Source: Zygnema circumcarinatum SAG 698-1b (Eukaryota; Plantae; Zygnematophyceae). From it: a DNA stretch of 64,000 nt. Position 1 is the stretch's first letter, and each line of letters opens with the position of its first letter. The notes under the pieces are model-generated. The model ran no database searches and was not told the origin of the DNA. It saw only the letters and a program-made list of their open reading frames with translations. Both the position numbers and the translations under genes were made by a program. Location of the stretch: contig CM074808.1 of the NCBI GenBank assembly GCA_037447605.1, forward strand, positions 4,154,001 through 4,218,000, given 5' to 3'. This document shows positions 3,701 to 56,810 of this stretch, piece after piece.

Positions 3701-4275
3701 TATACGAGTCAAAGCGAACCAAACGACAAGGGATTCTGTACCAGCAGATTTGACATGGATGTTGCAAAGGAGGCATACAATGAATCACATTTTCTGAGTA
3801 ACAAGTCGTTTTCGAAGATCAGAAAGAACTTAACCGAACTCGGTGCAGTAAGTACACACGTTACATGATGCGGTATATCACTACCAGTTAAAATGTTTCT
3901 TTCACCAAGTCAGATTCGATTTTGGCATGAATCTAAAATCCATCTTTCCATTATGAAGACTCCACACAGGTTTTCATACCCCTTGCATAAGGATACCGAA
4001 GAGGAAAGATTCCAAGGAGGCAGCCAAAAGCGTCACCAGCCTTGCTCACCTGTAACTGACGAGGTCTGCAAGGGTGAAGCCGTAGGGGGCGCTGATGAAG
4101 TTGAGCCCAAAGCAAGGCGCACGGCCGGAGGCGAAAAGGTCGCCGCTGTTGACTCAAGCCCAGCCCGGCCGGGCCCGGCAGCGTCAGTCAGTCAGTCAGT
4201 CAGTCAGGCGCGGGCGGGGCGGGGCCGCGTGCGGAGGAGGAGGAGGAGGAGAAGGAGGAGGAAGAGGAGGAGGAG

Positions 4276-4325
<50 letters not shown>

Positions 4326-4413
4326 GGAGGAAGTGGAGGAGGAGGAGGAGGAAAAGGAGGAGGAGGAGGAGGAAAAGGAGGAGGAGGAGGAGGAGGAGGA
4401 GGAAGAGGAGGAG

Positions 4414-4448
<35 letters not shown>

Positions 4449-12295: not shown

Positions 12296-12488
12296 GGGGG
12301 AGTCAGACCTTAACCATCGCCAAATCAATTTCGTAAGCCTGTCAGGTGAATTAAGCATTGGCTAGGTACGCATTTCGGTACGGCTGGGCCCGGCGGAGCC
12401 GCGGATCCCGACCCGGAATTCGTACACGTGACTTTTCGTATATGGAATTCGGCAATTTCGTAAGCGATGGTCAAGGTCTGACTCCCCC
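12296..12488. mobile_element. 193-bp non-autonomous DNA element, GGGGG-TIR family, flanked by TA
   Basis: ta|GGGGGAGTCAGACCTTAACCATCGC ... GCGATGGTCAAGGTCTGACTCCCCC|ta. The same TIR occurs at 53560, 54785 and 58203/58227. Confidence 0.85.
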
Positions 12489-13669
12489 TACTCTGAGGTT
12501 GCCAAGCCTGGGTTCCGCCGGGCACTGTGCACACGAAGCACGCAAGTTTGCGGATGTGAGTTTGAGTTGTTGGAGGGCGGGATAACGTCCGAATTCGTTT
12601 GGTTAGGGAAGCGTGTCGAAACACGTGGTCTGTCCTCCCACTCGCTGGAGCGGCTGACGGACGAAGGAGGCGCCACACTGCGACTGCCCTGTCCTGTCCT
12701 GCACTGCGCTGCGCTGCGCAACAACAACAAGGACAGCGAGCGAGACAACAACACGCAGGAGGCCAACAGGTGCAGATTCACTCATGAGTAAGACAGTGTG
12801 CATTGCATTGCATTGCATTGCATTGCTGTCAGAAGCCGCTTTGCGTGAACACGGCCAAGTGTCATACGCACAATATACAAGGTTCTAAGGGTGAAGCTCT
12901 TGCACTCTCGTGTGCTGCACCTAATGAACAGAGGCCCAACTGGGAGACTTAAATTGAGCAGAAAGGCCACATAGTGCCTTCCCAGACTGGGCCCCGCTAA
13001 AGACCAGGAGCCGCACACCGCAGTTCCATGCCCGCATGCCCGCCGACACAGAGGACGCGGACGCTGCCGCCGACCCTCAGCCTCGCGGCCGTCGGCGCTT
13101 TCGGGCCTGACCGGGAGAGCGTACGGGACAGGCCCAGGCGTGGCTTGGCTTTGCTTCGCTGCAGCCCCCCTCGCCGCGGAAAGAGCACGCTTCCCAATCG
13201 CTCGCTTCTCTGCCTCCCTCTCTTTACTGCGAATCAAATACAGAACGGCAGTCGAGACTGCGTTTGAACTGCCCGCGTGTCTTCACGAGGCAGCCTCTCG
13301 CACTTATCAAATTCGACCCGAGCACATTTCCTTGAAAATATTGTCGCAAGAAAATGGGATAAGATTCTCCTCCATTGACGGGTAAACACACAGAAAAGAG
13401 TGAGATCCCTGAGCTCCACTCTCCAAATCTAGTTCCCGTAGATCTTGCAAGCCTCGTTATGTACTTGTCTTCTCTTCCACATCATTGCTTTTCTGACTGC
13501 TGTTTCTGGAATAATTAGATATGGACACAGAAAACCCTTCACTTGATCAGCTTTTCATCGGACAACTTTATCATGAAACCGACACAAGCGCGCAATGCTG
13601 ACGTACGACAACCTGTCGGAGGCACGTACGACAACCTTCCTGTTGCGACTGGACAAGGAAAGCATGATG

Positions 13670-24468: not shown

Positions 24469-27400
24469 TCACGTCCCCGACGATAGAACCAGCGACTGGC
24501 GAGGAAAACACACGATCTCTATCACCGTGGGCTCTCGCGGATCATCGAGCGGCTGCTGCCAAGGCTCTCCGTCAAGCTGCATGTACGCTTTGTTCCTGCC
24601 ATTACCTCTCAGCTCAATCTTGATCGCGTATGCCTGCCATCCGCAAAGAATAAGTGTTTAACACCATAGTCAACAATTCACCAACAAGCACACGCATTGT
24701 TGACAAGCGATGATAAATTCATATCTGAAGTGTCATCGCAACATGAAAAACACATAGACAAACACATAAACAAGGTATAGTTTGAAACGGAGCAGCACCT
24801 GTGCCAGGCGGATGGCAGAAGAAAGGCCTCCCATAAGCAGCGCTGTGTGCCAGCCATCCTTGAGGCCTACAACCTCCAGACGGCCGTCATCTGGCCGAGG
24901 TTCTACCCAGCCTTTCTGAACCCCATCCCCCCATTCGCACAACGTGTCAGCTGCGGCAAGGAAGCACGCTTTTCGCGCTGCGCTGCTGCAGAGTGGAGCG
25001 TGCCATCCACACCTCTTGCACTTCCTTCTCTGACGGGCGTCCCCACGGATTACGGCCTCCGGCATAACTCTGCAAGTTGAGCACGATGATGGAACGAAGT
25101 CTGCCATCCACAACACCATCCAAATGCAAGCGACGAATCGTCGGCCCCGAGCCGGGTTTGCATGGTGCTCCTACAGATCTTATAGGAAGAGGCATGCCCA
25201 AGGCATGATGAACAAAACTGCCGAGGGTCGTTTCACTACACGCTGAATTTTCCACTACACGGCCAAGTGAGGAATCTATAACCATTCCTATCTAAACATA
25301 TGCGGTATACTGGTTGCCCAACCTCCGCTGTCCGCAAAGCTACTTCATAAGGAGGTCGTGCATCACTTGATTCCCAATTAGCTAGCAAAGTCATGTACTC
25401 CGCACTGTCCTCACGACAAGGATCTGATGCTTACGTCCAAGGCAGAAAGAGCTCCTCATAGGGGCTGTCAGGCTGCTTCATGATGTGCACAGTGGCCACT
25501 TGATGAATTGATCTGCAGCCAATCATGATGAAAACACCAAGTGCATTAAAAAACAAATATGCGGAATATCCGCAGCGCACCACAAGGGCCTTGTTCAGCA
25601 CTTTGGTTCAGCAAGGCGGACGCCAAAGAGCGTTAGCCGAGATGGCTAAGGGGTGATGAAACCCACCTTCTGCGAGGATTGGGGGAGCAGCCGGCACAGA
25701 ACCAACCTTGACCGCAGCCAAAGCCCGAATAGATCATCTGCGCAGACATCACATCGCCTCGTCAGTGCTCTGCCTTCACAGTCTGCAAGCAGGCTCAAGC
25801 AGGAGTTTGTCGGCACATGCCTGGTTCGCTGCCCGGCCTCTTGCCAGCCACGGACGCACTTCACGAAGGTGGTGGAAGCCATACGCGATCTGTGCATCCA
25901 TACCTGCACAACCTCGCTTTGATTACCACACTGCCGAGATTCCACCACAAAGCAGGCCGATGCAATGGCCGTACTAAAGACGAACCTGCACGGTATTGAG
26001 CAGGAGCAGACACTCCACAACTACTTCATGCGGAAGTTAGCAAACGGTGGCGCACCAATGCTGAAGTAGTTGTAAAATGCTCCTGCAAATGCGTTAGGAA
26101 CTTGAGCCGCTCCGTCTGCAATCACTTCGTCCTGATCGTCTGTGCTCTGACAGGTCAGCCTCCCCACTCCCAGGCCGGCCATTGAGACCCGCTTGGAAAC
26201 AGAGCGTCGCCCAAGCTCCTATGTCACCTATTGATGCCATCACTCACCTCATGCTATTAATTCTAGGACCGAATATCTTTGACAAAATCATCCTTTTAAC
26301 CCAATTGGTTGCGTTCAAATTCGCAAGCCATCAAGGAATCATGCAAGGAACTTAATTCGAAAAGCGTAAGAAGTGTAAAAAGTTTGACAGGAACAATCAT
26401 CGGTAGCCTACCAAAGATGGCTCGAGAGGAATATGGTGCTGCGGGTGCATGGCATGCGGCAGCACTAAGGCTGCCTTATCGCTCCCGGCAGGTGGCAGCA
26501 CTATAATATTCCAACTGCAAGACAAGTCCAGAAGCATCAAGTTTAAACTGGTATTCATTATTGATTAGCATAAGAAATCACCCCATTCCCACTACCCACT
26601 AGAATGATGGCATCATCGGGCAAAAGTACTAGCAGTTTCTGATCCCTACTGAACCTGTACATCACCTGTCAAGATTGGCCTTGGCAGCAGACGTAGCTGC
26701 CAGTAAGCGAGCTTTGACTGTTGCTGCTGTTGCTGACTGGAAAGCTGCCCCCTGCCAGACCATAACACCGCGAGTATTCTTGCTTAATAGAACCAAAAGA
26801 TGATGACCGCAAATGTGCCACGTTTGGAATACAGTACATACCCAGCCAAAGCTCCGTGAGAGGTCATTGCCGGTCCCGAGGGGAATAACACCGACAGGTG
26901 GCACAGTCCGACCGTCGAGCTGTGCTACGCTTGACAACATCCAGCCAACCGTTCCATCTCCGCCGGCCACCTGCATTTGTAACCAGAACACGTTCCATTT
27001 GTCAAACAATTCAGCGGGTTCCATTTCCTTGCTCACTGCATTATTCTGAAGTATCCGCATATAAGAACGAACATCCTCGACTCATCCAGGAATATGTTCA
27101 AATAAGCAGTAATGACGCATGTTCTGGCCTTACCAACACACGAAGGCGCTGCAGCACCTCTGCTGCTGCCTTGTCCCCGCTGTCTGCTCGCTCTTGCAGA
27201 CACTTCAGAGCCGCCTCAAGTGCTTTACCTGGTGCGATCTTTGACAGATCAAAGACCTACAGTCACACGAGAAGTGTAACAAAGCCTAGATAAGAATCTT
27301 ATCTACAAATGACGCCTACACGTTTTCCAGCTGGCAATGTTATAGTGAATATACTCCAATGCAAATAGCCTCCTGTAGCAGCACTTACCGCAGTGCAAGC

Positions 27401-28336
27401 ACTAAAATCCACAAAGAAGTTGAATTATACTGTTCAATAATCTTTGAATAAAAGAAGGTCACCCTGAACAGCGTAGGCAATCTCTAGGCTCAAAAAACGT
27501 CGCCAAATGCTGGTCACTGTCAGGCACAAGGCTATGGAACTGAGATAAAATAACAGTATGGGCAGTAATGATATAATTGCGACATGAACTCCACGTGGGT
27601 CGTTACGTGTAGGACCATCATGTTTAGGTCTAGTCGGATAGAGGTCGACTAACTTGTGGAGGTCAGCTTCCACTTTAGTGGTAACGGCACAAAGTCAACA
27701 TATAAAGGAAGGTTCGTGTCAAAATATGTCCAGCGACAAGACTAACGAAGCGAGTGCACGAGCCTTACGATCCTTACAAGAAGACACCGGCCCGAAAAGA
27801 AAAATGCAAACTTTGCAAAAGTTTGAACGAGTTGTTGCATTGAAAAGAGGAACGTCCACTGCGGACTGGCTCCGACCGAAGTAGGACAAGTAAATACAGA
27901 CGATTAGACGGTAGGGGGACACGGCAAATCCCCATTTGCTCTTCCCCGGTTCGCCATCCAGGGAGCGTCAAGAGGTCGCGAGGCGGAGCAAGCAGCATTG
28001 AGCAGGGCGGGCGGCGGGCACCTGCGCGGGCCCGATGAGGTCCGCCAGCAGGCGGATGAGCGCGGCCCCCATGCGCCCGCCACTGCGCGAGTTCACGAAC
28101 GCGAGCAGCGGGGCGCGCGGCACCGCCTCCGCCTCCGCCTCCCCGCCCACCGCCATGGCCAGGGCCAGGGCCGCGTCGTCGGCCGCCTCCCCCGCGGGAG
28201 GACCGCCCACCGCCGCGACGGCCGCGCTGACGGCCGCCGCCAGGCGCGGGGGGAGGACCGCGCCGGCCGCCACCTCCGCGTCGCGCCGCGCCCCCCCGCC
28301 CCCGCCCCCGCCCTCCCCCTCCGCAGCCATGGCCAT
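24469..28336 (-). CDS. DGK: Diacylglycerol kinase, plant cluster II (DGK3/4/7-like, no C1 domains)
   Basis: PLLAFVNSRSGGRMG (exon 1), VFDLSK..LRVL, VAGGDGTVGWML..PPVGVIPLGTGNDLSRSFGW, FYNYFSIG|MDAQIAYGFHHLR, RSIIVLNLQSYAGGRNPWG, DDGRLEVVGLKDGWH, AYMQLDGEPWQQP, stop at 24469. Confidence 0.95.
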
Positions 28337-28731
28337 GGCCGCCCTCGCCCTCGCCCTCCCACCCGCCCGTCGCGCGTCAGACGCCGACTCGACCCGCCCC
28401 GAGCCGAGAGCAGCGAGGCGGAGGCGGGAGCGGGGGCGGGGCCGTACGGTGCCGCTGGGCCGTACGGCCCCGCCTGGCCTCTCATTGAGGACCGTACGGG
28501 TGGTCACTGACTGACTGACTGACCTCTCGAGGGCCGCTCCAAATGTTCGGGACAGCGAGGCAGGCAGGCAGGCAGACAGGCAGGCAGGCAGGCAAGCAGG
28601 CTGCGGCCATGGCTCCGCCCCCCTCCTCCCCGCGGCGCGCACGCCCGTGTAGTAGTAGGACTCGCGCTGCTGCTGCTGGCGCTGCGGCCCTGCGGAGATG
28701 ACGCCACTCCTGCTCATTGCTGCGCCGCTCC
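28337..28731. promoter_or_regulatory. About 395-bp GC-rich interval between divergent DGK and LptF/G-like start codons
   Basis: Divergent ATGs at 28336 and 28732, with (ACTG)n and (GCAG)n tracts between them. Shared promoter is inferred. Confidence 0.5.
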
Positions 28732-31700
28732 ATGGCCGCCCTTCCCGCCCTGCACGTGCTTCGCTCACCGCGCCCTGCACCTCTTGTCTGCCTTCCCCCC
28801 ACCGCTTGTCGTGCCACTTTAGGGCGCGTGCAGAACGAGGGACGCTGGTCTCAGATATTCTCGAGAGGCTCCATTGTTCCCCTAGCACTTACGCATGAGC
28901 TGCTGATGAAGTGCCACGGCGACTTGCTTTACGGGCGAAAGCAGAGAATACGGCCGAGGGAACTTGGTTCGAATTGCACTTCAGCTAGTAGCAGGGGCTC
29001 AACTGCATCTGCATCAGCAGTAAGCAGTGGGAATCCGGGCGAGGCCCCAGACAGCCCTCGGACAGCCTTCCCGCGACAGAAATGGGTTGCGGCAGCAATT
29101 TCGGGCGAAGCGTTCGGAGCATGGCGGAGATCCATGCTGCAGCGGCTGGACGCTGTGCTGAGTTCCGTGAGGATCGTTGCAGACCTTGATGCGATAAAGG
29201 AGCAATGCAAGTTAGGAGTTTTGGAGGTTTATCTGGCAGGAGAGATGCTTCCTATATTCCTTTTGGGCGTTGCCACCTGCGCTATGCTTGGCATGTCACT
29301 GGGCGCGCTTGCACAGCTCATCAGAGAAGTTGCTGTTTCAGGTCGGTACTTTCGCTGCCATGTGCTCAACTTGCCGAGTGCACTAAAGCAGCCAAGGTGC
29401 TGCGGTTCCGCACGGTCTGAAAGCCTCTTCTGCATGTGAGCTGGTTTCCAAAGGACGTGATGGGACACTGGCCTCCCAGGTGGACAATGTGTGGGGGAGA
29501 TCGTTGCATAGAGAAAGCTGCGCATGAGCAGAAACACGACCTCGCTGAAGATCAGATGATTCAGCCATCCACGTTTCGCCAGTTGCCGCCCTGTCTTTCT
29601 CGCGTCATAAATGTGTGATGCGTATCCTTCTAAAATAAATAAAACTGATGTTTTCACTTTCTTGCGATTCTGTTCTACGTATTCAAGGAATATAAGAGGG
29701 AGTTTGAAAATTTAAACAGAGAAAGACTTGTGCAAACACCTGACGGCATTAGCATCACAATGCAGGAATCCGTCAATCTTTCTTCTCGTCGCTCTTTGTT
29801 CATGGTTTGGTTGCATGTAACGTGCGTGGTATATCAAGCGGAAATGGTCATCTTTTGCCAGGCTGCGGACCAAATCACTTAGCGACACCCAACGGCGAGT
29901 GAATTTGTGGAGTGGATGCTGAAATTTCTGAAGAGAAAATGCACCTACAGTGGGGAGTATAGGATTTGTGAACATGCAGACTTGCAGAGCAGAACATGAA
30001 CATGCAGATCACTTGCAGGCGTTCAATAGGTGTTATTCAAAAGCATGTTGACAGCAACTGAAGGCTAAACAATGTGCTTTGCGCTCTTCCATGCCTACAT
30101 AAAGTGAATCAATTACATAAAATGGATTGTGTAGGTGAAAACATTCGAAGATGTCAAGTGCGCACTGGTGAGGCTGCTTGCGAATTCTGACCATATTAGC
30201 GGAATACTGTCATTTAGGCATTTAGGATTGGCTTAGGTTAAACGATGTTTCCAAAGTTAGAGATGTATAAGCTTTTAGTCCTCTGCTTACGATACCGTGA
30301 AGTTAGAAGAAAGCCAAGTGGGGAAAGCCTTGTTGTTGTGATTGTTTGGTGTTTGTACAACCCCTCTTCCCCCCACTCTGACCGTCTTTCTCGTTTCTTT
30401 TTTCCTTTTGCATCTTCCAATCAGTGGTAGGTAATGACGCCACTTGACAGTTTGAATACGGCATTTTCATTCTGTCCTTCCGCTCTGTGCAGGCCTACCC
30501 CTACGAGTGGCGTTTAGTGCAGCCATATTACAATTGCCGCGCTTCGGAGCTCTTGCAGCACCTATGGCTTGTCTTGGCGCGACATTGCTTGTTTTCAACC
30601 GGCTAAGAGTGAGTACCGTCAAAGTCCCAAAAAGATGCGCTTGGTCGAATAAGCAGTTGATCAATAGGACCCGTTTTTGTTAATGTTGGACAAGGTTGAG
30701 GTTCGGGGTGCGCACATGCATTCAGGCGCCGTTTTTCTGAGAAGCTGACTGATTTGATCTGCTCTCATATTCTCCATTATCCTCAGTTGACGCAATGACT
30801 TTTTCGGGTAGCACAACACAGAGCATTGTTAGATGTTAACTGGACCCCTTAAAACTGGTCTTTTTGCGACGTTTGAATTTTAGACTGCCCTCTCTAGAGC
30901 AGGTTATCTGATCCCAGGCTCTGCTATATACATAGTTTTGCGCATGAGTCATCCATACACCATCGCCCGCTAGCCGTTACTATTTCCCGAGCACTCTCTG
31001 ATCTGTCATTCCCTTTGACAGAGTTCTCATGCGCTTCTGTGAACTCTCCTTACCTTATCAAGTTTGGTGCTAGGTTGTTGCTCATAGTTTAAACACTATA
31101 AATGAAGTTACGTTCCTATAAAGGGCACTTATTCCCAGAGAAAATTCACAGATTTTAACGTGTAAGCCTTATTTCCATTTTCTTTTGTGGAGGTCTTTCT
31201 CTTTCTCATTTCCTCTCTTCTCTTCATTTGTCCAGAAATCTGCCGTTCTGTGTGGGGTCGTGTGTTCGGTGATTCTCACTGTTAGAAGTTTCTGCTTGAC
31301 AGTCTGATGCGGAGCTTGTGGCGCTGGCAGCGGCAGGCGTGTCAAGCTGGCGGGTCCTCGCTGCGCCGCTCGGCCTTGCAGTGGCAGCGGCGCTCCTCAC
31401 GCTCGCATGCAATGAAAAGGTGGTCCCGGCAACAACGGCACTGTAAGGCCGGCTCGTTTCTTCCAGCCCCTATGGGTAGCTGGTCATGCTTCCGTCATTT
31501 TTTGAAAGCCAAATGAATGATTCGTTCAGTTTGCATGCAGGATTGTGGGGCTATGGAGAGAAGTTCTGGGCTGCTGAAAGAGTGCAGGTGGTCCCGGCGG
31601 GTGACTGTGGAGTTCAGTACATCTATATATTTTGCAGAAGCATTGGTACTTTGGAGTTTGGTCTGTGTAGTCACATAAAATGATATATGTTGTGTGGTAC

Positions 31701-34393
31701 GAAGCTTGATCAAAGTGGGCAATGGTGAGTCCTTTTTGCGAAACCGGGATTGTTGGGATAAATCTTAGACACGAAGGGAATTGGGGAGCCAAGCAGGGCT
31801 CGACGCATGGTGGAGACAGCTGTCACGACAGAGCTGCGAGGCATGCGTCCACAAGACAACATGCTTTACAAGGAGTACAGCACAAAGGTGGGAGTTCTTT
31901 TGATCTTTTTTCTCATAGTAGTAAGTATAGGTTTGCACTGTTGGTTGTTCACTTCTTATTTTTTGTGCAAAACCTGCATGATGTGGTAGCTTTTCCGATA
32001 TAGATTCTGCTGATGTACAATTAAGGAACTGCAGAAGTTGAAGTGTGCTGGATGGGCGTTGCAGCAATGTTGGTCTTCTCATAGCCTGTGTTTAGGGGGG
32101 TCATCTCTGTTCAGGGTGAAATTTTTGGGGGACTTCTTTCTGGTGAGTCGTTTAGCAGGTCATCAGCACCGCCGTCTCTATTGAGGGCCCGAAAAACCCT
32201 TCGGAGAGTGTGGTATGCTGACCGGATGGAAGGTGGGACCATGCATGGCCTCACTATGCTTGAGATTGCGCCGAGTGGAGACCTGAAGACGGTGGGTGGG
32301 TAACTACCAGTTTTCCTTTTTTTCAATCGTAGTAAAGTCTGTATGCACTCTGTCAAAAAATCTATGGGCGGTGTGCAGGAATGTTTGACATATGTACATG
32401 AACTAATCCTACTTTAGTTTGAGGGGAATATCTTTATCAGAGATGAACGGTGCGTGTGGTTGCAAGATATTCTGAAATTTCCGTGACTGATAGTGGTGCA
32501 TGGAGACGCTAGCGAAGTGTCCAGCCTGCCAATAACATCCCCACAGTTATTTTGTCAGTCTGCTGTTGTTCTCTATTCTAAAGGGGTTGGAATTTTTTTT
32601 TAATGTTTTGATCTGCAGGTGGTGACCGCTGACAGCTGCACTTGGAATTGGTCTGACCATGTTTGGGAGCTCAGCGGGTGCACCGCCCTTCAGTTGGCGG
32701 ACGACCACTCTCCATGCCGCATCCTTGAGGTGGGTCATTGGGTTTTTTTTTTTTTTTTCTTTTTTTTTTTAGTTTTTGGCCAATATCGCTTAGTCGGGGT
32801 AAAGATAGTTTTACGAGTTTTTGCACAGCAGGAGGATTGAGTTCAACCTGCCAGTGATCTTTTCTATGTTTTGTAATCATTTCTTTGGGTGACTTATTGT
32901 CTTCCCAGATGTGGTTGTGTTTGCTTAATGTTCCTTGAGGGGAATGAATTTGGTGGAAAGCATTTATCCGGAGATGACAAATTCATTTTTAGCTCATGCC
33001 TTTCTTTTGCTCAGAGCTCTACACAACAAAAAACAAGGTGTCCTGAAATGGGAAGCTTTCGACACGGGAGTGCATGGCTATCAAGAAATGCCCAGCGTGC
33101 AGGCCAAGTATTGAATGAAAGACTGAGTGCTTAATTGAAAATCATTGGTGGCAATTTGTATCCAACTTCATAGCAAAACTGTTGTTTGTGTGTGTGCGGT
33201 TCTGCTCCTATCATGTGTCTGTACTAACGTATGACCAAAAGACTAACCTAGGCACCTTGTCCTTCCTTCACATTGATCGGAAGTTAAATTATGGCCGGAG
33301 AAGGGAGGTCGAGGTGGTGCAGTTTGGATGCAGAGATTGTGCGAAGAGTGGCTCAGGAGCAGTTTCTACCCCTTTGATAAATGCCACTCTTTACCGCATT
33401 CTATGTGTTTGGAGTAGTGGGCTTGTTCCTGTCGGATTTCTCACAGGACTGTCTTTTTCTTCGGTTCTCAAGTGACTTGCGTATGTCAAGGGAAGATGTC
33501 TGCGTCTTATGGCGTGACTCTGTTTGTTTTTTCCCTGCTGCATGTGCAGGCGGAAAGGCTAGAGCTCCCAATGCCGGAGCAGCCGCTTGCTGCCAACTGG
33601 GAGGCTCTGGACGTGCAGTTCCCGTCGCGGCAGGACGTGTGGGCGCGCGTGGCGCGGCTGGCGGAGGACGTCCGCCGAGGCGGCGGCCCCGCGGCCAGGC
33701 AGAGGCCGGACGTGTGGGTCACCCCGGACGGGCGCCTCCGGTGGGGGGGGCGGGGCTGGCTGCGGGCGGGCCTCCTCGGGCCGGGGAAGCTTTCGGGCAG
33801 AGTGGCGGAGATCCTGGAGGCGGAATGCAGCTTGAGACAGCGCGATGCGGCTGCGTTTTCGTGTCTCGTGTATGCGCTGGTCAGTGCGTCGCTCCTTTTG
33901 GATGAATGGTCCCTTTGGGAATCAACATGTATGTTCATCATGGCAGTAGAGAGCGGGCTGCTGTTCGGCCGTCGTAGGCGTCAGCCACAACTTTGCTTTG
34001 CTGTGGATTTGATGTGTTGAAAGTGTGGCTTAGCCTGTCACACCCAATGTGGGCAAACTGCATAGTGCAGGGGGCATGCATGCAAAGTAAATGCAACATA
34101 AAGCTCGAGTGAAGCTCATTGCTAACAGAGCTGCGTAGCGCTGCTGGCAGGTGGGCACCGCTGCCACCATGGCGTGTTCGCGGCAGGAAGGAAAGACCTT
34201 CCGCGGCGGGCGGGCGGGGCCCTTCGTCGCGGCGCTCGCGTGCGTGGCGGCGCACAGCGTGCTGAGCGCCGTGGCGGCGACAGCTGGCGCGCAGGGGCTG
34301 CTCTCGCCGGCCGCCAGCGCGTGGCTGCCCTGCGCCGCGGGGCTCGGCATGGCTCCAGCAATGCTGCTCGCGTCATCGCGTACGAAGAGTTGA
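28732..34393 (+). CDS. lptF/lptG: LptF/LptG (YjgP/YjgQ) family lipid/LPS-export permease of cyanobacterial type, with N-terminal transit-peptide-like extension; 8 exons, about 605 aa
   Basis: Exons 28732-29341, 30493-30608, 31303-31442, 31797-31887, 32115-32291, 32619-32729, 33550-33879 and 34151-34393 join in frame (1818 nt) at GT-AG sites. Peptides: VYLAGEMLPIFLLGV..LIREVAVSG|LPL..QLPRFGALAAPMACLGATLLVFNRLR|SDAELVALAAAGVSSWRV..NEKVVP, NMLYKEY, RVWYADRMEGGTMHGLTML, VVTADSCTWNWSDHVWEL, GLLSPAASAWLP. These follow the LptF/G pattern P..L+T...RL..DSE+.AL...G.S and ..LSP..+AWLP. Confidence 0.85.
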
Positions 34394-35503: not shown

Positions 35504-36719
35504 TGTAGCACAAAGATAAGTGGGGTTAAAAGGAGACTGCTGAGCTAGTTGCAGGTGCTGTACGGCCACTCGCGCGTCCGTGCTGAAACTGATGAAGGGT
35601 TGGGTTGGTTCTGTGGGTCTGCCTGCAGCATAGAGCCAGGATCCGGGAGATTCAGAGGTACGCGCAGCGGAAGACGTAGGGATCCTGAAGATGTTCCCAC
35701 CGGCGGCTGGACCCGATGCGCAATGAGCCCTTCCTTGGGGGCTCTCCTCCCCTGTCCTCCCCTCGGCTAGTCTCTTAGCTAGGCTTCTAGTTATCATTGG
35801 TCATTGGGAGGAATGTAAGGCAGGATAGAATAAGATGGTAGCTTGGCATAGTGACAGCAAAGGGAAAACAGGACTCAACTTAGATAAAGGTTGTATTTTG
35901 GAAAGTCACCCCAGCCAGCGGTTGGCTGGGGATTGTCATTACAATGAAAGTATCTTCTCACTGAAATCTTTGTCTGGCTGGGCTGAATGGGACGTCTAAA
36001 TGCTATTGTTAGTGTAAAGTAGTTAGGGACTTGTTGTACACTAAGTTGTTGGTACTAAGTTCTAAGGAGGGGTGTGCTCATGTTGTCCACATTGTACGGA
36101 GGGGCGTCTAGGCGACCGTACAAGTCTTTAAGGGGTGTGCATGTAGCGCGCAGAGTCTGATTTGGCAAGGCATCAGAATGTCGGTGCGGCCAATCAGTGG
36201 TACGATTTGGAAGGCCAAGACCATGGGTGTACGGACATTGGTCGGTGGCGCGGCGCGGCGTGGCGGAGTCAGATGTGACGTGGCGCGACACGACAAATCG
36301 AGAAGTGACGAGGCGCGAATCAGCGCGCGGAGCAGAACTGACAAGGTACGGAGTCAGCAATGATTCATTTGGAGGACAGTGNNNNNNNNNNCGTGACATG
36401 ACAATGTCACTAATGGCGCCATATAGTATTTAAGGGTTAGATTGTTTGGTAGAAGTTAACCTTCTCGTGACTCACATCAGGGTGAGGTTATCTTGCTTAG
36501 GGCCTAGGAGATAGTGGGAAGAGTTCAGCTTGTAGTGGGTGGTTTATTCACGTAGCTTGAGAAGAGGTGCTTGAAGCTTGGCTCTAGTGTTGTCAAGTTG
36601 TATTTCATCTTTATCTTAAGGAGTTTTAGGCTGGTGGCTTTCTCCTTACATTTTCATATTTCCGCTGAGTTGTTCTCTTGCATTTAGTGTGCTTTGTGTG
36701 ATTGAGCAATTCATTGAAA

Positions 36720-37358
36720 ATGTCGAGTTCTACAAGTGCTAGAGGAGAAGTGGCAGCCCCACGCATGGAGGGCGCTGCAACAACAAGTGGTATCAGAGCC
36801 GAAGGCGAAGAAGACGTGAAGTTTACCATTCCAACTTTCGATGGGAAGAACTACAAGCTGTGGAAGTTTCGCATGCTCACGGTGCTGGAGAACAAGCGGC
36901 TGTTGGGGTATGTGAATGGCTCCATTGTGGCCCCCGATTCAGTGATTAATCCTCTTGAGTTTGAGAAGTGGAGGGTTAAGGATTGCAAGGTTAGGACCCT
37001 GCTTTGTGCTGGCGTTAGTGAGGAACCTACAGACCTGATTTCAGAGTTAAAGACAGCTCGGGAGATGTGGGATACTCTAGAGAAGATTTATGATGTGGTA
37101 GATAATGCCACTGTAGTTTATCTCTACACGGAGCTTGGAAAACTCAGTTTGGATTCAGGGGAGGAGCTGAAAGACTATGTGATCAAGTTTGATAATCTGA
37201 TGCAAAAGTTTGATGGGATGAAGCAGCCCCTTCACTTGGATCACAAGATTAGTCTATTCCTTGGAGGCTTGCCGGATAGATTTGACCCTGCTTGCACTGC
37301 TCTACGAACTCAGCTTTCTACGACTAAGATGACCTTTGGCTTGGTCCAGAGGAAGTGA
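36720..37358 (+). CDS. Copia Gag (UBN2-type), ATG inside the 5' LTR; terminated early by an apparent frameshift
   Basis: VKFTIPTFDGKNYKLWKFRM..LLGYVNG..KDCKVRTLL..TAREMWDTLEKIY..KISLFLGGLP..F. Confidence 0.85.
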   Translation: MSSSTSARGEVAAPRMEGAATTSGIRAEGEEDVKFTIPTFDGKNYKLWKFRMLTVLENKRLLGYVNGSIVAPDSVINPLEFEKWRVKDCKVRTLLCAGVSEEPTDLISELKTAREMWDTLEKIYDVVDNATVVYLYTELGKLSLDSGEELKDYVIKFDNLMQKFDGMKQPLHLDHKISLFLGGLPDRFDPACTALRTQLSTTKMTFGLVQRK

Positions 37359-37418
37359 GGAAGTTGATTAAACAAATGCCAAGAGAGATGAAGCGCCAAA
37401 GGATTCACGAAGGCGAAC

Positions 37419-38438
37419 TTGATGTTCTCGGATTGGGGACCTAATGATGAGTTTGTCGGATGTCTTAGAGTTGAAAATTCAGCTAAACCTTGGGTGATTG
37501 ATTCCGGTGCTTCAAGGCACATGTGCGTGGACGACTCACTCTTTGCAGAGAAGGAGACTTTGGAGGGAACCCGCTCGGTCTACTCGGCAACTGGAGATGG
37601 AGTCTCGGTGACGCAAGGCGGAACAGTCAAGTTGGAGGTGCTCGGGGAGGGAAGCACGCAGAGGGTTGTCCATGTTGGTAACGTACTGCATACTCCCGGA
37701 CTACAGATTAATTTCCTCTCTGTTAGTCAGCTGTGTGAGAAGGACTATGGAGTATGGTTTGAGAAGGGTAGTTGTGAGGTCATTCACAAGGAGACAGGGC
37801 AAGTCTTGTGCAAGGGAATCCAGCAAGGTGGGCTTTACTTCCTAGAGAAGAAGGAGGCTCAAGGGCTGAGCTATCCCGCCAAGGACCCTGTGGAGGAACC
37901 CATTCACCATAAGATAGATCCAGACCAGCTTGGAGGAGGAAAGGGGATGCTAGAGCAAGCATTGAGGCTCAGGGGAGCAGGGGATTATTTCGCCAACGAC
38001 ATTTCAGATAGCCAGGCTAAGGGGGTTGAAAGACCCATCACCGAAAGGGTGGACATTAGTGGTGGTGAGAATGTGTGCGAATTCCAGGATCACTCAGAGT
38101 TAGTGAGCTCCAAGGAGGCCGGAAACACGGGCTTGTTGCATCCAAACAAGGATGGAGTTGAAGTGGAGGGGTCCTTTCAACCCAGGGTAGTTGAGCAGCC
38201 TGAGCACAAGGTTGCGGCTACAAAGGAATACCCGGTTGCTGGACCTATGAGGAGTTCAGCGGAAGCGCCCAGGATCGAATGTGGAAGGCGACCAAGTGAG
38301 GATCAAGAGGGGGATGATGATCTCTCGGGCCTTTGGATCAAGAGGGGGCAGCTTGTTCAGACAAGGGAGCATACATTTAGTTGTGGGACACTAGGGGATT
38401 GTAGTGGTCTCATGGAACTAGGGCCCATGGGGAACTAA
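37419..38438 (+). pseudogene. Copia protease plus start of the pre-integrase region, fused to an unrecognisable tail; no integrase core, RT or RNase H
   Basis: WVIDSGASRHMC, VLHTPGLQINFLSVSQL, G..QGGLYFL; then no HHCC, D,D-35-E or YVDD motifs before the PPT. Confidence 0.8.
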
Positions 38439-44639: not shown

Positions 44640-47633
44640 GAGGATCCGAAGCGGCCATGGCTGATTGATTCCGGCGCTTCTACGCATATGTGCGGAGACA
44701 CATCGATGTTCTCCAAGCTCGACAACTTGGAGAAGACACGCTCAGTCCATTCAGCAACCGGTGAAGGAGTCACCGTGACGAGAGGTGGAGCCGTGAGGAT
44801 GATACTCGGAGACGGCTCGGTCATCAATGAAGAAGACATACAAGAGAAGTTGTCAATTGGTGACGTTCTTCACACCCCTGAGCTAAAGCAGAATTTCATG
44901 TCTGTTAGCCAAGTGTGTAAGAAAGGATACAGTGTTCTGTTTGAGGAGAAGTCATGCGTGGCCATCCATACAGAAACTGGGAGACAGCTGTTCAGGGGTT
45001 ATGAGAGAGGAGGGCTGTATTTTCTTGATTACAAGAGGGAGAATTATGAGCATGTCAATGCAATCTCAGAGAATGCCGTAGATGTATGGCATAGAAGACT
45101 TGGTCACTTACACCATAGAGGAATGCAGCAGTTGGCTGAGAAGGGGTTAGTCCGTGGGCTAGACCCGGGTGTAGTGGAGAAGGAGCTTGGGTTGTGCCAG
45201 GAGTGTGTGGAGGGCAAGGCGCACAGGAGACCATTCGTGAGGAGTGGAGACGAGTCCTATCGAGCGCGAGAGAAGTTGGAATTGGTACATTCTGACTTGT
45301 GTGGCCCAGTTACACCGGCGACCAGTGGCGGAGCGAGGTACTTCGTCACCTTCCTTGACGATTACTCGAGGAAGATTTGGATTACGCTCCTCAAGAACAA
45401 GTCAGAGGCTTTCGGAGCCTTTCGAGATTGGCTGAACCAGGCGGAGACAGAATCAGGACAGAAGCTGAAGGCTTTGCGCTCAGACAATGGCGGCGAATTC
45501 AAATCCAAGGAGTTCGCAGGGTTCCTGAAGAACCGCGGTATAAGGCATGAATTCTCTGCCCCCTATTCCCCTCAAAGTAATGGAGCAGCTGAGCGAGTGA
45601 ATCGGACATTGGGGGACATGGCTCGGACCATGTTGATTGATTCCCCCTTTCCAGCTTCTTTTTGGGGAGAAGCGGTTTCTACTGCTGCGTACATTAGAAA
45701 CAGATGTCCGTCTTCTGTTTTGAAAGACCAGGTCCCCGAGCAGATGTGGAGTGGGAGGAAGCCCACAGTTTCCCACCTGAGGACCTTTGGTGCGCGATGC
45801 TGGGCTGCACTGCCCAAGGCGCGACAGAAGAAGAAATTTGACCCTCGAGCGGTAGAGGGTTATGTTCTCGGCTATAACACCAACAGCCACACGTATAGGG
45901 TGTGGAACCCTCGACTGCAAGAGGTCCTGAGCACGAGGGACATTACAGTTGATGAGGGGAGTGCTGTTGAACGTGTTGCAGACTCTCAGATCTTTCCTCC
46001 AGCGAAAGTGGATTTCGAGATCGTGTATGAGGAGGGAGAGACGAGTGGAGAGCGTGATGTCACTGTGCAGGATGCCAGCACATCACAGAGTGAAGGAGCC
46101 GAGCCAGCAGCTGCGTCAAGCGAGCCTGCTGATGTTGAAGAGTCGCCAGAAGAGGCGCATGCGGAGGAGCCGCAGAATTCGACGGAGACGATTCCACTGC
46201 ACACTCAGTCCAGTGGAGAAGAAGAGAACTCCGTGGAGACGGTGCCACTGCACACGCAAGAGTCTGAGGACCTTGAAGCGGCCGAGAGAGAGGCTATGTT
46301 AGCGAACATGCCCCTAGGTTTTGTACCCGGACTCTACTTCTATCCGAAAGGACAAAGCGCGAAGGAGGTTCGGAAGAGCAGTCGGGACAGGAGGCGACCA
46401 GATCGGTATTCGCCTGAGAACAACCTTATCCAAGAAAGAGTGCCTTCAGATTCAGCTGACCTTGTGGGAGTTGCCCATTGCTTTATGATCACGGAACCAC
46501 AGACCTTTGAGGAAGCACACGACGGAGTCGATGGCGACAAATGGCGAGTGGCGATCGATAGCGAGTGGGACAGCTTGATAGAAAACGGCACGTGGAGGTT
46601 GGAGAAGCTGCCTCAAGGGAGGCGAGCTATTGGCTGCAAATGGGTCTTCAAAGTCAAGAGAAAGGCAGACGGAAGCGTGGACAGATACAAGGCGCGGCTA
46701 GTGGCGAAGGGATACGCCCAAAAGTATGGAGTTGACTACGTGGAGACTTTCGCTCCAGTGGTAAAGTTCAACTCCTTGAGAGCCTTGATTTCCATCGCAG
46801 CGGCTGAAGGAATGCATGTCCATCAGCTGGACATCAAGACGGCATTCCTGTACGGAGATCTAACGGAAGAGATCTACATGGAGCAGCCGGAGGGGAAGGT
46901 GGTCCCAGGAAAGGAACACCTAGTCTGTCGACTAGTGAAGAGCCTATATGGTTTGAAGCAGGCGCCCAGAGTGTGGTACGAGAAGATAGATGATCTTCTG
47001 AGGAGGAATGGTTTCGACCGATTCGAAACAGATCATTCCGTGTACCGTCAAGGAGAGGGGGCGGACATCATGTTCGTCGGGATCTACGTTGATGATCTCA
47101 TAATGGTGAGCCTCTCGCTTGAAAGAATCAGTTCCTTGAAAGAGTTGCTTCAAGCGAATTTCAAGATGTCAGATTTGGGGGAGGCGCAGTATCTGCTTGG
47201 GATGCAGCTGAAGAGGGGGCAGGATGGCAGCTTATTCTTGTGTCAGAAGAAGTATGCATCGGATGTCCTTGCCCGGTTCCACATGGAAGATTCTAGGCCA
47301 TGCTCCAGCCCGATGGAGATAGGCGCTAGATTGTCGAAGGAGATGTCACCTTCGAGTGCAGCAGAGGCGCAGAAGATGTTCGGAGTGCCTTACAGGTCTG
47401 CGATTGGGAGTCTGATGTACCTGATGATTGGAACGCGTCCGGACCTGGCGAAAGCAGTGAGCTCGGCCAGCCGATTCATGGAGAATCCGGGCCTCGAGCA
47501 TTGGGAGGCCGTGAAGAGGATATTCAGATATGTGAGAGGGACGCTTGATTATGGGATCAGGTATGAGAGGGGGCCAACCAGAGTGATTGGCTATAGAGAT
47601 CAGACTTGGGGCGGTATGCACACATCGCGTTGA
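44640..47633 (+). CDS. Copia-2 pol: protease, integrase and reverse transcriptase in one open frame; RNase H (47600-48074) broken by frameshifts
   Basis: WLIDSGASTHMC; VWHRRLGH..CQEC; LELVHSDLCGP; LRSDNGGEF; PYSPQSNGAAERVNRTL; RYKARLVAKGYAQKYGVDYVETFAPV; LVKSLYGLKQAPRVW; GIYVDD. The downstream remnant reads FHKRTKHIRVQYHYVRE..Q.ADMLTK. Confidence 0.95.
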   Translation, partial: EDPKRPWLIDSGASTHMCGDTSMFSKLDNLEKTRSVHSATGEGVTVTRGGAVRMILGDGSVINEEDIQEKLSIGDVLHTPELKQNFMSVSQVCKKGYSVLFEEKSCVAIHTETGRQLFRGYERGGLYFLDYKRENYEHVNAISENAVDVWHRRLGHLHHRGMQQLAEKGLVRGLDPGVVEKELGLCQECVEGKAHRRPFVRSGDESYRAREKLELVHSDLCGPVTPATSGGARYFVTFLDDYSRKIWITLLKNKSEAFGAFRDWLNQAETESGQKLKALRSDNGGEFKSKEFAGFLKNRGIRHEFSAPYSPQSNGAAERVNRTLGDMARTMLIDSPFPASFWGEAVSTAAYIRNRCPSSVLKDQVPEQMWSGRKPTVSHLRTFGARCWAALPKARQKKKFDPRAVEGYVLGYNTNSHTYRVWNPRLQEVLSTRDITVDEGSAVERVADSQIFPPAKVDFEIVYEEGETSGERDVTVQDASTSQSEGAEPAAASSEPADVEESPEEAHAEEPQNSTETIPLHTQSSGEEENSVETVPLHTQESEDLEAAEREAMLANMPLGFVPGLYFYPKGQSAKEVRKSSRDRRRPDRYSPENNLIQERVPSDSADLVGVAHCFMITEPQTFEEAHDGVDGDKWRVAIDSEWDSLIENGTWRLEKLPQGRRAIGCKWVFKVKRKADGSVDRYKARLVAKGYAQKYGVDYVETFAPVVKFNSLRALISIAAAEGMHVHQLDIKTAFLYGDLTEEIYMEQPEGKVVPGKEHLVCRLVKSLYGLKQAPRVWYEKIDDLLRRNGFDRFETDHSVYRQGEGADIMFVGIYVDDLIMVSLSLERISSLKELLQANFKMSDLGEAQYLLGMQLKRGQDGSLFLCQKKYASDVLARFHMEDSRPCSSPMEIGARLSKEMSPSSAAEAQKMFGVPYRSAIGSLMYLMIGTRPDLAKAVSSASRFMENPGLEHWEAVKRIFRYVRGTLDYGIRYERGPTRVIGYRDQTWGGMHTSR

Positions 47634-50600: not shown

Positions 50601-52664
50601 AGGTCAATCGCTTCAATCTTGTCGAGTGATGGTTTTAGGCCATTGATGCCGAGGCGGTGCCCGAGATGAGTGATCTCCTGATGGCCCCATTTGCACTTCT
50701 TGGGTGCAATCTTCAAACGCGCACTGATGAGCTGTTGAAGTACTTGGTCAATGTGTTGCAGGTGGGAGGACCAGTCCTTGCTGTGGAGGGAAGCATCATC
50801 CACGAAGGCTCGCAGCGACAGGCCGAATACCTGCTGGCCGTGCGCCGTGAGTCTGGCTGGAATTCTGAGCCCAAAGGGAAGACCGGCCCACGCGACGTAA
50901 GCGCAGGGTCAGACAAAGCCCCTCGGCCTTGCAAAATATCAAATTGCCGCAGGGGGATTCGCCAAGGACTTCGCGATGTCTGTGGCCGAACCATCGGTCC
51001 TCAAAGAGACGCCGCGGAGAATCAGTCCACATCCGTAACGTGAGGCGATCCCACTTCGCTATGGCATTCGCCCGGAGTAGTCTCCACAAGCGATCAGGCT
51101 ATCCGGCTTTGGGGCAGAACGGCCGGTTGGCCCAAGGCCCTTCTCCGGGTTCCATCAATCCGGCAGCCACGTTCTCATCGATCTGTCGCTCGACATCGGC
51201 CTGCTGAGCGGCGGAAAAGCGGTAGGGAGTCATGGTCATCACGGGAGGGGCATCCCCCGTATCGATGTGATGCTCAATCAGGTGAGTCTTGCCGATGTCG
51301 AGTGAATGGCGTGCAAAAACCAGGTGATTTCGGCGCAGCACTTGGCGTAATTGAGAATGCTTGATCGGGTCTGAGAGGACTGCTGGCCCCAATCGCATCT
51401 GACCCTCTATCTCCAGCCACTCTTCATCACTGATGGTCTCGTGGGCTGGAAAGCTGGGTGCAGCTATCACCGGCGGCAAAAGTTCCTCCGTCGGCGCACA
51501 GAGGGCTGGATTCGGGGGAGCAGGAGGGGAAGTCTCGTCATCGGTATCAGAATTGGCCGATCCATAGGAAGAATGGGGGCTGCCGACAGCATGGTACATG
51601 GTGATCTCTGGGTAGGAGACCTGCGCCGTGGCGTGGCGTTTGGGGAAGGCGGAGGTGGCAAGGGACTCGAGGATGATGGGGAAGGAGCAGTCTGTCCCGC
51701 CAGCAGATAAGTGCAGCTGACACGTAGCAAAGTCGATTTGTGCTCCCATCGCAATGAGCCAATCTGAGCCCAGCAGGATAGAATAGTGCTCAACGGCCGT
51801 GATGACCGCATTCACCGTGGCTCCCATCTCGCCAAGGCTGATGATCACTTGGGCACTGCCCAATCCTTCATGTAGGCTCCCCTCACCCCATATCGGGAAT
51901 GGGCTCAGCCGCCTTGTCCAACTTAACACTTGCAGCCTTCATCACTGGTTTAGACAGAACTGTGCGCATAGCTCCAGTGTCGATCATGGCCTTGCTGGGA
52001 TGACCGTTCAGCCATACATTGACAATGATTCGCACGTTGGGTGTGGGGATCAGAGGGAGGATCTGAATCTGGCGAGGAGGATGGCGGGGAGAGCGAACTG
52101 GGTCCGGAGGAGGCGCCGTCGCCATGTGGTGGATATCGCCGGGCGAGGGATGTCCGAGGAGGTGCCATGGGAACTGCGTGTGTCGCAGGTGGACTCCGCG
52201 ACCGCCGTGGCCAGCTTACTTAATCCACACGGGCCGTTACCCGGTACCAGCTTTGCATCAATCAGGACAAGGTACGCTCGATCTTAGCCTTGTCTCCCAT
52301 GAGCTGATGAACCATGCGTTCAATCAGGGATAGGCCGTCTGTGGGGGGGGGTGGTCGACGATCGGCTGCTTGGGGGTAGAAACGGGCTGCCCGAGGGCGA
52401 TGGGGCGGGTTGACATGCATTTCTTCTGTCGCCGGTGCTGTCGGCTCTGGCTGCGCCTCTGTCGGCTCCTCCTCATTGAGATCGTCAGTTTCCTCCTCAG
52501 GCATGGATCCCAAGGGATGACCTGTGGAAGGAGGGAGGACTGAAGTTCTCCGGACAGGGGTGGCGACCGGTGGAGCCGTGCCGGAGGAGCTGGCGCCGTT
52601 GACATTGGCAGGGAGGAATGGCAGGGGATGTGAATGCGGATCACTTTGGTTGACNNNNNNNNNN

Positions 52665-56129: not shown

Positions 56130-56810
56130 CAACTCAATTCAAAGTTCAATGACATACAAATCATACACACAACAGAAGCATAAGCAAAGGAAGAGGGGCA
56201 CAAGCAAAGGCAAGGAAGACAGGCAAGGGCAACACAGCAAAGGGCAAAGGCAAGGGAGGCTGGGACAGGAGCGAGGGAGGCAAAATGCGTATTGCAGAAA
56301 ACAGCATCAAAAACAAAAAAAAAAGAATGTTGCAACAGCAGCAGAGCAACAGCAGATAGGATAAAATATAGAATAAAGAGTAGATAGATAGAATAAAAAC
56401 AACTAAAAAAAAATAACAACAAATATTTGGCATATGAAGCAAAAACACAAAAAGTTTAAATAAATAAAAATAGAAAAGTGAATAAACACTATAAGTTGAA
56501 GAGGGGATTTGAACCCCTTTATTACTGTTTTGCAACAGTTGCGTAACCAATCTGCCACTTCAACTTAATAGGGAGAGGAAAGAATGACATACAATCATAC
56601 ACACAACAGAAGCATAAGCAAAGAAACGAGGGGCAAAAGCAAAGGCAAGGAAGACAGAGGCAAGGGCAACACAGCAAGGGGCAAAGGCAAGAGAGGCTGG
56701 AGCAAGTGCAAGGGAGGCAGAATGCGGAATGCGGAATGCGGAATGTCGAATGCGGAATGCCGAATGCCGAATGCGGAATGGGAAATGCAGCAGCAAAAAA
56801 AAAAAAATGA
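56130..56810 (-). repeat. Tandem copies (about 1.7) of the same STR-rich unit, opposite orientation
   Basis: ATGACATACAA(A)TCATACACACAACAGAAGCATAAGCAAAG and the GGCAAAGG/GGCAAGG runs repeat at ~56148 and ~56584. (GGAATGC)n lies at ~56720-56785. Confidence 0.85.
56494..56564 (-). tRNA. tRNA-Cys(GCA)-like cloverleaf with a 6-nt anticodon loop
   Basis: GTTGAAG TG GCAGATTGGTTACGC A ACTGT TGCAAA ACAGT AATAA AGGGG TTCAAAT CCCCT CTTCAAC T. Perfect 7-bp acceptor, 5-bp anticodon and 5-bp T stems, box B GGTTCAAATCC and U73, but the loop is one base short. Confidence 0.7.

Follow-up and report, generated by a model that had tools for sequence, protein, structure and literature searches.

A nuclear gene for a divergent LptF/LptG-family permease in Zygnema circumcarinatum

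Introduction

Accounts of how lipids cross the plastid envelope rely, to our knowledge, mainly on the TGD importer together with TGD4 and LPTD1, and no inner-membrane extractor of the Lpt type has a place in that picture. In Arabidopsis, LptD has two described orthologues, TGD4 and LPTD1 (PMC12096540). Arabidopsis also has homologues of lpxA, B, C, D, K and kdtA, and AtLpxA complements E. coli lpxA(ts) (PMC3355754); in the account given by the same paper, the Lpx pathway was placed in mitochondria by Li et al. 2011 and histochemical evidence for chloroplast lipid A was provided by Armstrong et al. 2006. A transporter for the products of the plant Lpx pathway was not among the reports that we found in the literature. 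Here we analyze a 64,000-nucleotide stretch of Zygnema circumcarinatum SAG 698-1b (assembly GCA_037447605.1, contig CM074808.1, positions 4,154,001 to 4,218,000 of the forward strand; hereafter the window) and conclude that it carries a nuclear gene for a divergent permease of the LptF/LptG family, the equivalog of neither LptF nor LptG. With somewhat better than even confidence we also read the locus as encoding a functional permease that forms the membrane subunit of a type VI ATP-binding cassette (ABC) lipid extractor in the inner membrane of an organelle.

The original prediction for this locus, made from the DNA letters alone, stated that no characterized LptF/G was known from green plants, and our literature search also turned up none. 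Full-text searches returned no link of LptF, LptG, YjgP or PF03739 to plants, plastids or plant mitochondria, although automatic annotations of the domain may well exist in databases of plant genomes, and the supplements of plastid-proteome papers held no Lpt or YjgP entry. One LptG match, in a chloroplast paper, was discarded because there the name of LTPG20, a plant protein, had been misspelled. The name 'ycf84', given in the prediction for a YjgP/Q gene, had no match in the literature searched.

Results

Gene structure, family membership and predicted fold

The permease gene spans 28732-34393 on the plus strand, where eight exons joined across seven GT-AG introns make up one open frame from the ATG at 28732 to a TGA (Table 1). 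The spliced coding sequence of 1818 nt encodes a product of 605 aa and contains no internal stop or frameshift, which bears out the predicted intact, in-frame eight-exon gene, and every motif that had been quoted for the product (RVWYADRM, GLTML, VVTADSCTWN, VWEL, SP..SAWLP and MAALPALHVLRSPRP) is present. The start of exon 4 was placed at 31797 because in-frame joining requires this acceptor, which restores the frame and gives the same junction (VVP..TA joined to.ARRMVET) as the orthologous mRNA P0002/L001. The first plausible acceptor, at 31769, was rejected, as it breaks the downstream frame. A 12-nt string near the end of exon 3 (GGTGGTCCCGGC, within 31408-31442) recurs in intron 3 (~31575-31600) directly after CAG, and the repeat may mark a cryptic splice site or reflect a minor local duplication.

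An orthologue from a related plant, the 600-aa protein P0002, was found with an exon 1 query among 1.8 billion cluster representatives and is encoded on a 2561-nt Logan contig from run SRR8128905. It shares 71% identity with the window protein over residues 160-604 and is collinear with it to the stop codon. Membership in the LptF/LptG family, for which a PF03739 profile search had been proposed as a check, was upheld by that search: exons 2, 3 and 8 match Pfam PF03739 (LptF_LptG) collinearly when searched exon by exon (scores in Table 1; exon 3 alone passes the family cut-off of 27.9 bits), an NCBIfam search agreed with this, and P0002 matches the profile at 139.8 bits (E = 1.5e-40). Matches of P0002 to Protein Data Bank (PDB) sequences were confined to LptG and LptF chains. 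PF03739 was the only family detected in a Pfam scan of the exons of the gene and P0002, with no MlaE domain (PF02405). Because three exons carry collinear PF03739 matches and orthologues exist elsewhere, a chance chain of open reading frames (ORFs) is ruled out.

Hydropathy of the window protein reveals three hydrophobic segments, a beta-rich middle and three further hydrophobic segments. An AlphaFold2 model, built from a 55-row alignment for the 71%-identical orthologue P0002 rather than for the window protein itself, places helices at residues 147-288 and 492-594 and strands at 295-422, with a predicted local distance difference test score (pLDDT) of ~90 in the transmembrane (TM) core and ~80 in the beta-sandwich or jellyroll; confidence is low in the N-terminal 145 residues and in one internal insertion. 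When this model was compared with the PDB by Foldseek, the best 22 matches, without exception, were to LptF or LptG chains from LptB2FG(C) complexes (best E = 1.6e-14; target-normalized TM-scores of 0.49-0.67), in agreement with the profile search. The six TM helices thus fall into two groups of three (3+3), TM3 being separated from TM4 by a beta-jellyroll; the original prediction had read from the letters three N-terminal TM segments, a beta-rich soluble domain and three C-terminal TM segments.

Table 1. Coordinates, in window positions, of the permease gene and its upstream spacer
Feature	Position	Strand	Description
Intergenic spacer	28376-28731	.	GC-rich, ~357 bp; head-to-head with a diacylglycerol-kinase-like gene (minus strand) whose start is estimated from its ORF
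Exon 1	28732-29341	+	Residues 1-~160, basic extension that is not conserved (putative targeting peptide and linker), then TM1
TM1 in exon 1	29218-29337 (residues 163-202)	+	Invariant plant motif LGMSLGAL..L(I/V)REV; TM1 kept in all plant orthologues
Exon 2	30493-30608	+	TM2 (LPLRVAFSAAILQLPRFGALAAPMACLGATLLVFNRL); PF03739 positions 39-75, 20.7 bits; 87% identity to P0002
Exon 3	31303-31442	+	Coupling helix SDAELVALAAAGVS (31303-31344), then TM3; PF03739 positions 78-121, 38.7 bits
Glu246 of coupling helix	31312-31314	+	Invariant; aligned with E. coli LptF E84 and LptG E88
Exon 4	31797-31887	+	Tail of the long TM3 helix and first part of the soluble domain (ARRMVETAVTTELRGMRPQDNMLYKEYSTK)
Exon 5	32115-32291	+	~28-aa insertion (32115-32198) at the jellyroll start, then beta strands (LRRVWYADRMEGG...); strands of the orthologue model at pLDDT ~80
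Exon 6	32619-32729	+	Beta-jellyroll strands (VVTADSCTWNWSDHVWEL...); W..W motif common to bacterial relatives
Exon 7	33550-33879	+	End of jellyroll; Gly/Arg-rich ~50-aa insertion (33655-33801); start of TM4 (LRQRDAAAFSCLVYAL)
Exon 8	34151-34393	+	Remainder of TM4, TM5, TM6 and C-terminal SP..SAWLP; PF03739 positions 296-350, 22.5 bits
Stop codon	34391-34393	+	TGA

Orthologues, selection and expression

Over 446 aligned core codons the window gene and P0002 differ with pN of 0.169 and pS of 0.745 (synonymous sites are saturated), corresponding to a dN/dS of ~0.05, and this comparison indicates that the gene is intact and under strong purifying selection. P0002 and its near-identical allele P0013 occur as intron-less contigs of ~2.6 kb in at least seven sequencing runs; since they lack introns we take these contigs to be transcripts, and they therefore support expression and the splice junctions in a relative. 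Further orthologues lie on six plant genomic contigs (L002, L003, L004, L005/L006, L007 and L008), whose exon blocks match those of the window gene, with some introns lost in L004 and L007; an NPH3 gene adjoins the orthologue on L005. In a maximum-likelihood (ML) tree all eight plant sequences group together, with 100% support in the Shimodaira-Hasegawa-like approximate likelihood-ratio test (SH-aLRT), and their clade is divided into three subclades. A short duplicated piece of the exon 2 start (ISGLPLRVAFGAA) was observed on L007 at 12402-12443, where it precedes the real exon (12624-12890) by ~200 bp.

Homologue searches with the whole of P0002, with its TM1-3 or with its jellyroll returned only the query and a fused bacterial LptFG, P0012, the word index used being weak on Ala/Leu-rich TM sequence. 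From these searches we infer nothing about the presence or absence of the gene in particular plants.

Bacterial relatives and the origin of the gene

Among the bacteria sampled, the plant protein scores best against uncultured high-GC organisms (L009, L010, L038, L049, L053 and others; GC 0.63-0.72), at 84-93 bits; fused LptFG of the Rokubacteria type reach 45-64 bits, and the PDB entries for proteobacterial LptG ~29 bits. The sampling was made with exact peptide patterns taken from the query rows, such that the bacteria retrieved share query motifs, and because only these patterns could be matched the tree includes no cyanobacterial sequences. The best-scoring bacterial loci (L009 1092-3577; L010 37-1735; L040-L047) consist of an ABC ATPase gene (ABC_tran) followed by a single permease of LptF/G type, and from this arrangement we suspect that an uncultured high-GC lineage present in sediment metagenomes has a homodimeric Lpt-type transporter. 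A metagenome scan added further high-GC single-permease relatives at 25-44% identity, none of them nearer to the plants than L009/L010. Scanning contigs with two-row patterns tied to P0012 returned mostly Rokubacteria-type loci, while single-protein patterns, which fell in non-conserved parts, retrieved no relatives from the contigs. Plasmid tblastn yielded no match at E <= 1e-3 and, at E <= 10, only the lptF of an Azospirillum chromid.

These relatives raise an alternative to the cyanobacterial type and endosymbiont descent put forward in the original prediction, namely that the gene was acquired horizontally, from a non-cyanobacterial lineage carrying lptB and one permease, by an early streptophyte or plant ancestor. 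The bit scores favor such a donor, as do the presence of a single permease on both sides and the ML tree, which places the plants beside L009/L010 and outside both the unit-1 and the unit-2 clades of fused LptFG. That grouping has weak support (SH-aLRT 72), however, the plant stem is long (1.54) and cyanobacteria are not among the taxa. We regard horizontal transfer as a tentative explanation, less probable than not; endosymbiotic and horizontal origins are both compatible with these sequences.

The N-terminal leader and the predicted location

In the window protein 162 residues precede VLEVYL, the equivalent of the motif (I/L)(L/I)DRYL at which bacterial LptF and LptG start, so that the plant protein carries an extension ahead of the bacterial starting point. 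The leader of ~160 aa had been described as rich in Ala, Ser, Arg and Pro and poor in acidic residues; the first part holds (42% A+S+R+P, with 22 R+K against 11 D+E), and the second holds in moderate degree, with one acidic residue in the first 40. The leader is not alignable to the N-terminus of P0002 (pN 0.65). N-terminal extensions of ~110-185 residues are found across the plant orthologues, non-conserved and, in nearly all cases, basic and acid-poor; they are rich in Ser, Pro and Arg, and in most the first acidic residue comes late. In L001 the gene caller had chosen a GTG; the real ATG is found 14 codons further upstream. By its composition, which does not specify the organelle, the leader probably combines a presequence for organelle import with a short additional N-terminal segment after it. 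We favor the plastid inner envelope over the mitochondrial inner membrane with modest confidence because of the leader composition, and plastids also have the LptD-like outer-envelope barrels TGD4 and LPTD1.

The principal alternative on location is that the same machine works in the mitochondrial inner membrane and exports lipid-A-like Lpx products (lipid X and later intermediates). The Lpx pathway is reported as mitochondrial in Arabidopsis, at least as PMC3355754 cites Li et al. 2011, and chloroplast lipid A has been reported as well, which makes both a lipid-A-like cargo and a mitochondrial location live alternatives. Basic, Arg-rich leaders also suit mitochondrial presequences, but those seen here are long and rich in Pro and Ser (RSPRPAPLVCLPPTAC; Ser runs in P0005, P0009 and P0011) and thereby more like transit peptides. 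Moreover, Arabidopsis has Lpx genes but, as far as we know, no PF03739 gene, and co-occurrence of the pathway with the permease is thus not obvious. We consider the mitochondrial location unlikely, if well worth keeping in view.

The top representative match for exon 1 is P0001, a 1246-aa tandem-repeat protein with a 53-aa unit: leader residues 45-74 (28864-28953) match all 19 of its 19 units at ~47% identity over 30 aa and ~31 bits each. This match was not treated as homology, the summed score being inflated by repetition. The likeness could be chance magnified in this way, or part of the leader could derive from repeat DNA; no second copy of the stretch 28864-28953 was found within the window.

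Conserved residues and insertions

Eight plant sequences were aligned with E. coli LptF and LptG and with bacterial relatives. The coupling-helix glutamate (Glu246 in the window protein) is invariant in all eight plant sequences and in every bacterial one; we take its E. coli counterparts, LptF E84 and LptG E88, to contact the LptB ATPase, and know of no other role for this residue. The TM1 arginine in the LptF R33 column is also invariant in plants, a position that, like LptG K34, K40 and K41, we presume to be functionally significant in E. coli. Conservation among the plant proteins is highest in the TM core, and in exon 7 the motif QRDAA.FSC is conserved among the plant sequences.

Two insertions interrupt the window protein. 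The first, at residues 320-347 and the start of the jellyroll, is shared with P0002; the remaining plant sequences have a shorter form of it or lack it. The second, at residues 451-499 ahead of TM4, is variable and Gly/Arg-rich, occurs in the window protein and P0002, has no counterpart in the bacterial sequences and is modeled with low pLDDT in P0002; L005 has a long variable stretch ahead of TM4 as well.

These insertions and the long N-terminal extension, all without bacterial counterparts, and the large divergence from the LptF and LptG equivalogs count in favor of the possibility that the fold was kept but repurposed, as an ATPase-free protein or as a scaffold or flippase-like part of another plastid lipid system (TGD, LPTD1) rather than an extractor of Lpt type. 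Set against this are the invariance of the coupling-helix glutamate in all plant copies and the conservation of the TM core, and we judge repurposing to be improbable.

Genomic neighborhood and other window features

The gene is a nuclear one in green-plant DNA, as its seven GT-AG introns and the plant-type genes on both sides demonstrate and as had been proposed for the locus. A gene with a diacylglycerol-kinase catalytic domain (DAGK_cat, PF00781) lies within 26600-28730 on the minus strand, divergent from the permease gene, and a Pfam scan of the window also recovered a PRA1 gene, a protein-kinase gene and copia-type retrotransposons. By its motifs we take the protein kinase to be MKK3-like. 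The spacer between the two divergent genes is presumably a bidirectional promoter with both 5' untranslated regions; a tandem-repeat search located an (AGGC)11 microsatellite in it, within 28439-28601, where there is also an 18-bp direct repeat (GGGCCGTACGGCCCCGC). That the locus is a bacterial contaminant, a pseudogene in decay or a chain of ORFs formed by chance is extremely improbable, for although the transcript support does not come from the window copy itself, the gene has seven canonical introns, flanking plant genes, no stop or frameshift and a dN/dS of ~0.05, a relative yields spliced mRNA contigs, and orthologues occur on at least six other plant contigs.

The right half of the window is transposon-rich and includes eight runs of exactly 10 N (at 36382, 39829, 41321, 44625, 52655, 54914, 57985 and 63142) that look like assembly gaps or masking. 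Pieces of copia-type long terminal repeat retrotransposons lie at 36702-38438 and 44688-47633, with a gag ORF and an uninterrupted 981-aa pol ORF (integrase, RVT_2). Minus-strand ORFs at 50.3-51.9 kb are retroelement-like; the only one scanned, 51102-51929, had no Pfam match. A tRNA gene at 56494-56564 (minus) stands beside ~1.2 kb of low-complexity DNA (to 57760) with long Leu/Cys/Ala-rich ORFs in several frames, and at 4100-4750 a long simple repeat with purine/pyrimidine bias gives poly-Arg/Lys, poly-Gly, poly-Pro or poly-Ser ORFs depending on the frame.

Discussion

In the mechanism that we propose for a functional permease in an organelle inner membrane, the ~160-aa leader would direct the protein to that membrane with its jellyroll facing the intermembrane space. 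Two copies would pair there as a homodimer, which we infer because one gene is seen here and the bacterial relatives have a single permease, and would enclose a cavity whose lateral gate opens to the outer leaflet. A dimer of an LptB-type ATPase would dock on the coupling helices, and ATP binding and hydrolysis would then close the cavity and squeeze an amphipathic lipid or glycolipid from the outer leaflet onto the jellyroll, from which it would be passed towards the outer membrane. The cargo might be a plastid glycolipid or one of the lipid-A-like compounds made by the plant Lpx pathway. The gene is best described as encoding a eukaryotic, probably homodimeric LptF/G that bears a leader and insertions.

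Several observations weigh against this proposal, in whole or in part. The LptB, LptC and LptA partners are hypothetical, and nothing else Lpt-like occurs within the 64-kb window, the part of the genome that was covered. P0002 falls far short of the equivalog cut-offs: it scored 91.4 bits against TIGR04408 (LptG, cut-off 240) and 89.5 bits against TIGR04407 (LptF, cut-off 230), with no preference for LptF or LptG. The columns of LptG K34, K40 and K41 are non-basic in plants and do not, therefore, point to phosphorylated lipid A as the cargo. Another possibility is that the three plant subclades represent paralogues instead of lineages, which would allow a heterodimer. As to location, plastid and mitochondrion are not told apart by the composition of the leader, and a transit peptide of ~160 aa would be a long one. 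The transcript support belongs to the orthologue of a relative and not to the window copy. Finally, Met59 (28906) is an alternative start of the permease, and an upstream ATG at 28698, out of frame and 34 nt before 28732, opens a 66-codon ORF that overlaps the annotated start; another upstream ATG, at 28609, begins a short in-frame upstream ORF that closes at a TGA near 28699. Because of these ATGs upstream of 28732 the true transcription and translation starts are uncertain.

A more far-reaching version of the proposal is that some non-seed plants keep a full ATP-driven plastid Lpt bridge, in which the homodimer and an LptB-like ATPase of the inner envelope deliver lipid-A-like, galactolipid or sulfolipid cargo by way of the jellyroll to outer-envelope barrels of the LPTD1/TGD4 type, and that this bridge was lost or replaced in model angiosperms. 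We hold this to be unlikely. Should the organelle permease itself be confirmed, a conserved, leader-bearing LptF/G would give the LptD-like plastid barrels a possible inner-membrane counterpart and supply a candidate transporter for the orphan plant Lpx (lipid-A-like) pathway; if its origin is non-cyanobacterial, it would add evidence for a mixed bacterial ancestry of plant envelope-biogenesis genes.

Compared with the bacterial LptF and LptG of LptB2FG(C) (PDB 6mit, 6mjp, 5x5y, 8frl and 6mhu), the window protein has in common the PF03739 family, the 3+3 TM arrangement with a jellyroll between TM3 and TM4, the coupling-helix glutamate and the C-terminal motif P..(A/S)AW.P. It differs in being encoded by a nuclear, intron-bearing gene, in its ~160-aa extension and two internal insertions, in scores below the equivalog level and in the non-basic residues at the columns of LptG K34, K40 and K41; whereas E. 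coli has an F/G pair, a single plant gene is seen. The single-permease lptB-lptF/G loci of bacteria (L009, L010, L038-L057) are closer, with 38% identity over TM1-3 and 32% over TM4-6, the motifs LHQR..FaC..fAL and SP..AAWLPNV in common and likewise one permease gene instead of two, but their permeases have neither the leader nor the plant insertions and are encoded in an operon with the ABC ATPase. With the plant TGD1-3 proteins, an Mla-like ABC lipid importer, and with TGD4/LPTD1, the proposed permease would share a part in lipid traffic of bacterial heritage in the plastid envelope; TGD1 is a permease of MlaE type, unlike the window protein, which matches PF03739 only, and TGD4/LPTD1 are conceivable as its downstream partners. 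The plant Lpx pathway, in turn, resembles the permease as a retained fragment of Gram-negative envelope biogenesis and is a possible source of its cargo, although the Lpx proteins carry out biosynthesis, for which a mitochondrial site is reported in Arabidopsis, and the window protein would be the membrane subunit of a transporter.

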